Shown piece after piece: positions 34 to 33,987 of a DNA stretch of 64,000 nucleotides. The stretch comes from Podarcis erhardii. Taxonomy: Eukaryota. The position numbers and the translations under genes are program-made. The number at the start of each line of letters is the position of its first letter. Position 1 is the first letter of the stretch. The stretch is taken from the NCBI GenBank assembly GCA_964252035.1, contig OZ176201.1; one strand, 5' to 3'. The notes below the pieces were generated by a model. It searched no databases. It saw nothing but the letters and a program-made list of their open reading frames with translations, and had not been told where the DNA came from.

Positions 34-432
34 GCAGCGGCGCCAGTCCTCCTGCCTCCCGGAGGGAGAGAGAGAGGAAGACGCCTGCCTCTCCACCCTC
101 ACCGCCTCCGGCTGTGGCTTCACGGAACACCCGCCCCCCTCCGCACTGAAATAATTAAAGAGAAAAAGAAGAAGAAGAAGGAAAAAAACCCCAGCGAGGA
201 AGAAGAGCCTTGACGCCGGAGCTGTGCGATCTTTGCGGGAGCGGACACCATTTTGTGGCTAGCGGCTGCCTGACTTGCTGCATGCGGAGGAGAGGTGGGC
301 AGCCAAAAGAGGAACCTGTTGGGCGCCGCGATCGGGAAGTCGCCCAGCTGCGGCACTTCTTCGCCCTGGAATTGGGGGTTGCAGCAGCGTCCCTGGGAAT
401 CGGATCGTGCGCGGCAGCGGCAGCCTTGGGAA

Positions 433-456
433 GAGGAGGAGGAGGAGGAGGAGGAG
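433..456 (+). repeat. (GAG)8 trinucleotide repeat
   Basis: Eight GAG units read directly. Confidence 0.95.
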
Positions 457-473
457 GGAATTCGGAGGTTTTG

Positions 474-497
474 CAGCAGCAGCAGCAGCAGCAGCAA
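474..497 (+). repeat. (CAG)7CAA repeat, followed by an interrupted CAG-rich tail to ~526
   Basis: CAG x7 at 474-494, then CAA CTG CAG CGT CGG CAA CAG CAG CAG. Confidence 0.97.
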
Positions 498-664
498 CTG
501 CAGCGTCGGCAACAGCAGCAGGCAGCGAAGGGAAATTGGACCTTGCGCATCCCCATTCCTGGGTGGAGGCGAAGGAGATTTGCACCTTTGCGTCAACGGC
601 ACGAAGAGAAAGGCATTTGGACCTTTGCAACAGCAGCGTCCCTGGCAGGAGGAGGAGGTGAAAG

Positions 665-683
665 CTTGCTTGCATATATATAG

Positions 684-724
<41 letters not shown>

Positions 725-757
725 TTGCATACATATAGATTACACACACACACACAC
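665..757 (+). repeat. Duplicated unit: 22-nt head plus (AC)17, then 22-nt head plus (AC)8
   Basis: cttgcttgcata(t/c)atatagatt at 665-686 and 720-741, each followed by an AC tract. Confidence 0.95.
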
Positions 758-790
758 GTACATATTTTCCCCCCCTTGCAGGGCAGGAGC

Positions 791-832
791 ATGTTGGTCT
801 CGACGCAGCTCCCCTTCCCTCCTGTCCACTGA
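791..832 (+). other. uORF1 (MLVSTQLPFPPVH*)
   Basis: ATG at 791 and TGA at 830-832, inside the putative 5'UTR. Translation is not demonstrated. Confidence 0.6.
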
Positions 833-851
833 TCCCAGGCTTGGTGGGGCG

Positions 852-923
852 ATGATGGATACTTGCCTGCTTGTTCTCACTTCCCACAAAAGTAAGCCCG
901 CTGTCAATGGAGGAGGACATTGA
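852..923 (+). other. Overlapping uORF2 ([23 protein letters not shown]), out of frame and spanning the main ATG
   Basis: ATGATG at 852-857 and TGA at 921-923. The main ATG at 907 is in a different frame. Confidence 0.6.
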
Positions 924-976
924 TACCCGCAAGATAAACAACAGTTTCCTGCGCGATCACAGCTATGCAACAGAAG
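907..976 (+). CDS. PPP2R2B: PP2A 55 kDa regulatory subunit B beta (B-beta1), first coding exon (partial CDS, phase-1 end)
   Basis: Translates to [23 protein letters not shown]+G, matching the N-terminus of vertebrate PPP2R2B B-beta1 as I recall it. It ends at a canonical GT donor. Confidence 0.96.
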
Positions 977-33830: not shown

Positions 33831-33987
33831 NNNNNNNNNNNNNNNNNNNNNNNNNNNNNNNNNNNNNNNNNNNNNNNNNNNNNNNNNNNNNNNNNNNNNN
33901 NNNNNNNNNNNNNNNNNNNNNNNNNNNNNNNNNNNNNNNNNNNNNNNNNNNNNNNNNNNNNNNNNNNNNNNNNNNNNNNNNNNNNNN
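33831..33987. other. Assembly gap (157 N)
   Basis: Run of n characters. Confidence 0.99.

Follow-up and report, generated by a model that had tools for sequence, protein, structure and literature searches.

A compound CAG/CAA microsatellite in the PPP2R2B leader of Podarcis erhardii as a candidate glutamine-coding segment of a conserved open reading frame

The CAG tract in the 5' leader of PPP2R2B in the lizard Podarcis erhardii is best explained, in our view, as the glutamine-rich part of an open reading frame (ORF) that is conserved, starts with ATG, spans approximately 125 codons (positions 282–657) and would form part of the first exon of the B-beta1 transcription unit. We consider this reading fairly probable, on the strength of substitution patterns among five lizard sequences. 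All positions given here refer to a 64,000-nucleotide stretch of contig OZ176201.1 (assembly GCA_964252035.1), which we call the window; features of the leader are collected in Table 1.

Direct reading of the window gives (CAG)7 at 474–494 and CAA at 495–497, followed by CTG CAG CGT CGG CAA (CAG)3 to position 521, and Tandem Repeats Finder (TRF) reports a single period-3 array at 473–526. The tract is a real compound CAG/CAA microsatellite. An earlier note on this DNA, made from the letters alone, had described (CAG)7CAA at this place, about 160 nt upstream of a putative donor at 658 and about 410 nt upstream of the start codon; both the position and the distances hold, since the CAA ends at 497, 160 nt 5' of the GT at 658–659 and 410 nt 5' of the ATG at 907. 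The C-S7-N-C reading that it reported in one frame is also present, in the frame from 472 (TGC (AGC)7 AAC TGC). This is the only run of the CAG/CTG family with five or more units within the 64-kb window, and (CAG)7 matches, with two mismatches tolerated, numbered zero in 100 dinucleotide-preserving shuffles. The tract lies inside a GC-rich stretch (1–1650, GC fraction 0.52–0.67) that holds many microsatellites; elsewhere, positions 33831–33987 are a run of 157 N. The predicted RNA fold of the tract was unremarkable (z-score +1.0) and no Rfam family was matched in 1–889, and an RNA-structure reading of the tract was rejected on these two results.

Table 1. Features of the PPP2R2B leader in the window, and make-up of the CAG zone in each lizard sequence
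Feature	Position	Strand	Remark
Conserved non-coding leader start, includes ACGGACACCATTTTGTGGCT	215..281	+	Inter-species conservation begins about here
Candidate exon 1a ORF, Gln frame, from ATG 282-284 to last base before GT donor	282..657	+	Phase 1 end, as in the canonical ATG exon
(GAG)8, Gly codons (GGA) in the conserved frame	433..456	+	21-nt expansion of the window lineage
(CAG)7CAA, 5' sub-tract of CAG zone	474..497	+	Would encode Q8; lineage-specific expansion of a (CAG)2 seed (TGCAGCAGCC in comparators)
Interrupted 3' sub-tract CTG CAG CGT CGG CAA (CAG)3 GCAGC	498..526	+	(CAG)3 adjoins GCGAAGGG; core common to all five sequences
Most conserved ORF block (AKGNWTLRIPIPGWRRRRFAPLRQR.EEKGIWTFATAASLAGGG)	527..657	+	93% identity
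Putative small leader intron, GT 658-659, AG 780-781	658..781	+	Interior, including (AC)17, unconserved; basis comparative
Exon 1b 5'UTR, non-coding	782..906	+	90-94% identity, window vs each other sequence; 124-127 nt; 1-2 nt indels
B-beta1 coding part of first exon (MEEDIDTRK..., 23 residues plus G)	907..976	+	Donor GT at 977
CAG zone, window			(CAG)7 CAA CTG CAG CGT CGG CAA (CAG)3
CAG zone, L001			(CAG)2 CC ACC GCG AAA ACC G (CAG)3 CAA (CAG)5
CAG zone, L002 / L004			CGG CAG CC ACC G CAG CGG CGG CGG (CAG)5
CAG zone, L003			(CAG)2 GAG (CAG)2 CAC CGG CGA AAA CCG CAG CAC (CAG)4
CAG zone, L005			(CAG)2 CAA CCG CAG CGG AGG (CAG)4 CAA

The window was compared with five Logan contigs (L001–L005), each of which carries the leader together with the ATG exon. 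P0001 and P0002 were found with the long antisense ORF of the leader (123–887), P0003 was added by a HMMER scan of 1.84 billion representatives using the P0001/P0002 alignment, and P0004 and P0005 were found with a profile of the sense ORF in the Gln frame. Over 981 nt L004 and L002 are 100% identical, and L001 and L003 are closely related (89% identity in intron 1); the flanks are otherwise just 60–70% identical, with indels of every length. The comparison comprises five distinct sequences (the window, L001, L002/L004, L003 and L005), two of them closely related (L001 and L003), and represents at least four deeply diverged lineages, at least three of them in addition to that of the window. 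All searches (with the antisense ORF, by HMMER over all representatives, with the Gln-frame profile, with the region alone after exclusion of low-complexity words, and by a metagenome scan) returned only lizard-type contigs; birds, turtles, crocodilians and mammals were without a match in the protein, HMMER and metagenome searches, and no spliced mRNA contig was among the contigs from the Logan and metagenome protein searches. The query letters came from outside 890–935 (the final 17 nt of the 5'UTR and the initial 29 nt of coding sequence), P0001 being trimmed to 21–287 and P0005 to 1–160; roughly the first 18–20 residues of P0001 and P0003 are the ATG exon of these relatives read in antisense.

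A CAG-rich zone occupies the equivalent place in all four other sequences, where the pure runs comprise just 4–5 units. Across the five, pure CAG runs span 4–7 units and the longest Q runs 4–9 residues, the Q-rich segment of the window reading Q8 L Q R R Q4. Two elements recur in every sequence: a (CAG)3-5 core immediately 5' of GCGAAGGG, and a TGC(A/G)GCAG seed at the 5' edge of the zone. The middle of the zone varies from one sequence to the next, with size differences that are always multiples of three, and the zone as a whole is flanked by GGAGCTTGTG... on one side and by ...GCGAAGGGGAATTGGACCTTGCGCATCCCC on the other. As judged from this alignment, the Q-rich zone holds its place and its internal make-up shifts by triplet slippage. 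Because the other sequences show just (CAG)2 at the corresponding sub-position, the (CAG)7 of the window is a recent, lineage-specific growth of a (CAG)2 seed in the 5' sub-tract. Of the suggestion in the earlier note that the repeat may be an ancient amniote feature, the comparison supports a CAG-rich zone at a matching place in at least three further lizard-type lineages; great age of (CAG)7 itself, which has (CAG)2 as its counterpart in the comparators, is not supported.

Several further repeats were observed in the same region. The (GAG)8 at 433–456 is an in-frame expansion private to the window lineage, producing a Gly run where the other sequences have three. The ORF between 360 and 660 is made of degenerate internal repeats of approximately 37–80 nt (GGAATTGG..TTGCAGCAGCGTCCCTGG); the 15-mer CAGCAGCGTCCCTGG is found in identical form at 382 and again at 631, and at the protein level ALELG.AAASLGIG is similar to WTFATAASLAGGG. 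The CAG tract appears to have arisen from the TTGCAGCAG seed of one such internal repeat unit. On the minus strand of L001, a second small tract, (CAG)2CAA(CAG)3CGG, lies approximately 570 nt upstream of the main zone (reverse-complement positions 710–727); its equivalent would precede the first base of the window, and in L002, L003 and L005 it is either degenerate or missing.

The frame that reads CAG as glutamine is opened by a conserved ATG at 282 and contains no stop codon before the donor in any of the five sequences. The distances from ATG to donor (376, 352, 346, 358 and 340 nt) all equal 1 modulo 3. Outside the repeat zones, variable sites are distributed over codon positions 1, 2 and 3 as 11/11/28 (chi-square p=0.003), and codon columns with synonymous changes only stand against non-synonymous columns at 23:16 in the Gln frame, compared with 7:35 in the Ser frame and 7:36 in the Ala frame. 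The synonymous excess is present in each non-repeat block taken separately; within block 527–657 the Gln frame has 9 synonymous-only columns against 6 with residue changes, the ratios for the two remaining sense frames being 1:14 and 3:12. Pairwise dN/dS values (Nei-Gojobori) are 0.03–0.54 in the Gln frame, with dS of 0.12–0.35, as opposed to 0.65–7.5 in the other sense frames. When all six frames are compared by pooled pN/pS, the Gln frame gives 0.21 and is without stops, and the five others give 0.46–2.4: the antisense frame that shares the wobble positions of the Gln frame is at 0.46 with 4 stops, and the remaining frames are at 1.2–2.4. The Ser frame, with a pN/pS of 1.21, is interrupted by stops in three of the five sequences.

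Indels within the ORF are all multiples of three, yet all of them sit in triplet repeats that slip by threes in any case. The restriction to triplet indels is nevertheless not general to the region, because exon 1b, which is equally conserved, carries indels of 1–2 nt. We conclude from these patterns of substitution that 282–657 evolves as protein-coding sequence in the Gln frame, in which the CAG tract would encode a Q-rich segment. The context of ATG 282 is weak (T at −3 and C at +4). Searches with the 125-residue product gave only sub-threshold chance matches in Pfam, and in the ESM Atlas a best score of 0.64 with no recognisable look-alike; AlphaFold2 returned a mean pLDDT of 52.5, with helices at 16–37 and 61–81, one of which corresponds to the Q run. 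These analyses yielded no homologue, Pfam family or confident fold for the 125 residues.

Conservation across the leader is arranged in discrete blocks. Identity to the window is 53–59% with many gaps over positions 1–230, rises to 87–88% over 231–472, is complete over 907–976 (70/70; window, L001 and L002), and drops again after 977, in intron 1. Over the 300 nt 5' of ATG 282, identity to the window is 65–71% and indels of every size occur, and the upstream region, the interior of the leader intron and intron 1 together range over 53–70% identity with many indels. Exon 1a would extend from approximately 215 to 657 and exon 1b from 782 to 976. The sequence between them is 124 nt long in the window versus 47–64 nt in the comparators and is unalignable in its interior. 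The comparators retain its donor context (GGAGGAG/GTGAAAGCTTGCTTGC) and its acceptor (CCTTGCAG/GG), which in L003 reads AAG. Because donor and acceptor are kept around an unconserved interior of variable size, we infer that a small intron interrupts the leader; 658–781 has the comparative signature of a real one, and the donor that the earlier note had proposed at 658 is conserved together with an acceptor at 780–781.

Additional features were seen within and beyond these blocks. Positions 687–757 contain (AC)17 and (AC)8 together with a duplicated CTTGCTTGCATA.ATATAGATTAC unit, which brings the intron of the window to 124 nt; its relatives have T-rich interiors. Two short upstream ORFs (uORFs) lie in exon 1b: one at 791–832 (MLVSTQLPFPPVH), whose start and 13-codon length are kept in all five sequences, and one at 852–923, which overlaps the main ATG out of frame in nearly invariant DNA. 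In L001, L002, L003 and L005, a strongly conserved block (CGCGGTTGGCCAAAGCCGA.CTGTATGGGAGGAGCCT) is found approximately 450–500 nt 5' of the conserved ATG, outside the window; it is surrounded by poorly conserved sequence and may represent a promoter element or an upstream exon, and L004 begins inside it.

These elements can be set beside those of the human gene, in which the SCA12 repeat resides in exon 7, 133 nt 5' of the first reported start site (PMC9608770), and is contained in each of the splice variants 7B7D and 7C7D (10.1101/2023.04.02.535298). In P. erhardii the tract (474–521) and the ATG exon (907–976) lie on one strand, in the same 5' exon complex of PPP2R2B as the B-beta1 start, and comparative evidence from the five lizard sequences places the repeat upstream of an internal leader intron, as in the human splicing of 7B or 7C to 7D (10.1101/2023.04.02.535298). 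Because the layout of repeat, donor, small leader intron and ATG exon matches, the lizard exon probably corresponds to the exon that bears the repeat in human. The reading frames do not correspond: the annotated human frame is Ser (PMC11070597), for which a 7B7D polySer construct has been published, and the lizards conserve Gln (pN/pS 0.21 vs 1.21). The parallel that the earlier note had drawn between C-S7-N-C and the human polySer reading is accordingly not supported, in that the Ser frame is broken by stops in three of the five lizards and evolves at a pN/pS of about 1.2, with the Gln frame conserved instead.

Whether the tracts themselves share an origin is a separate matter, on which we are evenly divided. 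The lizard and human CAG tracts may have arisen independently within one homologous, GC-rich and slippage-prone exon, an account to which we assign an even chance. The pure run occupies different sub-positions even among lizards, and the (CAG)7 of the window grew from (CAG)2; several TTGCAGCAGC seeds are available in the degenerate internal repeats of the leader; L001 has another tract, (CAG)2CAA(CAG)3, approximately 570 nt further upstream; and the annotated (human) and conserved (lizard) frames differ. The two genotyping primers published for the human locus (PMC4733707), which supplied the human letters compared here, also match at chance level: for the forward primer the best local score was equalled by 207–252 of 500 shuffles (window, L001 and L002), 18 nt being too short to decide, and the reverse primer (in reverse complement), again of 18 nt only, was at chance level in four of the five lizard sequences. 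A search of papers for the published primer joined to the repeat gave no match. Against independent origin, the gene and the exon complex are identical, as is the order of the elements (repeat, donor, small intron, ATG); the mouse counterpart exon is also reported to have a short interrupted repeat; and a (CAG)3-5 core has been held in place across lineages whose introns are near saturation. Descent of the lizard and human repeats from one ancestral tract is plausible, falling a little short of an even chance in our estimate, given how labile the zone is within the lizards themselves and that the leader contains several TTGCAGCAGC seeds.

The RNA-type contig L004 bears on how the candidate ORF is expressed. 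It begins 5' of the equivalent of the window's first position, crosses the CAG zone, the unspliced leader intron and the ATG exon without interruption, and ends precisely at the last base of that exon, an end point that would be expected of an RNA assembly graph branching at a splice site. Because L004 runs continuously to the exon end, the CAG zone would be transcribed with the ATG exon in that sample, which supports the earlier placement of the tract in the transcribed 5' part of the B-beta1 unit. L004 passes the 657 donor without a break, the unspliced form being dominant there, with no branch and no path from 657 to exon 2. Sampled words from 100–1100 were found at a fraction of 0.36–0.48 in RNA-type runs of several related organisms and at 0.52–0.53 in DNA-like runs of the same organism.

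Exon 1a ends in GGA GGA G/GT (657/658) and the canonical exon in GAA G/GT (976/977), both in phase 1. Since this phase is found at the end of exon 1a in all five sequences, a direct join to the common exon 2, which lies outside the 64-kb window, would be in frame and would give ...SLAGGG-ADIIS.... Splicing from 657 to the common exon 2 would yield a B55-beta isoform whose N-terminal tail of 125 residues is largely disordered and includes polyGln. Known B55-beta N-terminal tails are roughly 23–26 residues long. If the leader is instead spliced through the 781 acceptor, the ORF of the window enters the main frame and stops at TGA 853–855, 17 codons before ATG 907; beyond that acceptor, indels of 1–2 nt put three lineages in three different frames. 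Because the frames of the lineages differ past the acceptor, the ORF is without a conserved end unless it is joined to exon 2. A Gln ORF extending through the 781 acceptor into the main frame was rejected on the same observation.

The principal alternative is that 282–657 is a long upstream ORF, such that transcripts carrying exon 1a give a peptide of approximately 150 residues, conserved as far as the donor, and that its translation, together with the two short uORFs of exon 1b, throttles the main ATG at 907. This is conceivable, though we think it rather unlikely. That one RNA-type contig connects exon 1a to the ATG exon through a retained leader intron would fit such an arrangement, as would the two additional uORFs conserved in all five sequences, the termination of the spliced window reading 17 codons short of ATG 907, and the weak context of ATG 282, which is compatible with leaky scanning. 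Purifying selection on 125 residues, combined with an end whose frame and length vary among lineages, would however be unusual for a regulatory uORF, and coding constraint ceases exactly at the donor, in a phase compatible with exon 2 in all five sequences. An isoform with an alternative N terminus is the reading that we favour over a long uORF, with a confidence that we would place at the midpoint between belief and doubt.

That the tract is instead a plain non-coding microsatellite, lying in a CpG-island promoter or 5'UTR under constraint, with conservation reflecting transcription-factor or RNA constraints and the codon pattern a by-product of triplet periodicity, is very unlikely: the leader is rich in triplet repeats and degenerate internal repeats, every indel of the ORF falls within triplet repeats, and work on the human repeat assigns it to the promoter or 5'UTR (PMC6939197, PMC3378862), but a low pN/pS without stops is confined to one of six frames (sense frames of the same composition give 1.2 and 1.5), the coding signal is found separately in both non-repeat blocks, and exon 1b is as conserved and yet admits indels of 1–2 nt.

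Taken as a Gln-coding part of a conserved ORF, the tract would be of more interest than a leader microsatellite. The mechanism of SCA12 is unsettled, and the literature discusses effects on the promoter, RNA foci, RAN products and a polySer reading frame (PMC6939197, PMC11070597, 10.1101/2023.04.02.535298); a sauropsid CAG zone lying in a Gln-frame ORF under clear protein-level constraint provides a concrete hypothesis for mammals. In its boldest form, which we judge quite unlikely, the SCA12 repeat would be the mammalian remnant of a polyGln segment in an ancient, alternative coding exon for the B55-beta N terminus, an exon still under purifying selection in squamates. On that same reading, and with as little confidence, the human 'non-coding' CAG repeat would have begun as Gln-coding sequence and perhaps cryptically still be so. 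The lizard zone is, in addition, a natural case in which to compare how tracts of this kind stay short. If the ORF joins exon 2, a phosphatase subunit whose location in the cell depends on its N-terminal tails would gain a new targeting tail; if the tracts are convergent, the finding is reduced to a coding microsatellite of lizards, labile and well documented.

Among known systems, the closest is the human SCA12 repeat itself, with which the lizard tract shares the gene, the B-beta1 start exon complex and a location upstream of an internal leader intron (10.1101/2023.04.02.535298), as well as short, non-pathogenic lengths (human normal alleles have 4–31 triplets). It differs in frame, which is Ser in human (PMC11070597) and Gln in lizards, and in purity: the normal alleles published for human are free of interruptions, but CAA, CTG, CGG and CCG break up the compound zone of the lizards. 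Mouse Ppp2r2b, compared here by description, is similar in that exon 2, taken by the authors to be the counterpart of human exon 7, is reported to contain 'a short, interrupted repeat' of the CAG type (10.1101/2023.04.02.535298).

The alternative first exons of B55-beta form a second point of comparison. The alternative 5' exons of B-beta1 and B-beta2 encode different N-terminal tails (PMC11070597, citing Dagda et al. 2003), and these tails are joined to a common exon 2, for which lizard exon 1a has the required phase 1. Unlike them, the putative lizard tail is approximately 125 residues long and contains runs of Gly and of Gln; its joining to exon 2 is inferred, and it showed no sequence similarity to the known tails. 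Finally, the lizard segment resembles the CAG/CAA-encoded polyGln tracts of conserved proteins (PMC3378862) in having a mixed CAG/CAA Gln run, a pattern of purifying selection, and a length that is labile between species; unlike those tracts, it belongs to an unannotated, putative ORF, in a gene for which the human repeat is viewed as non-coding.
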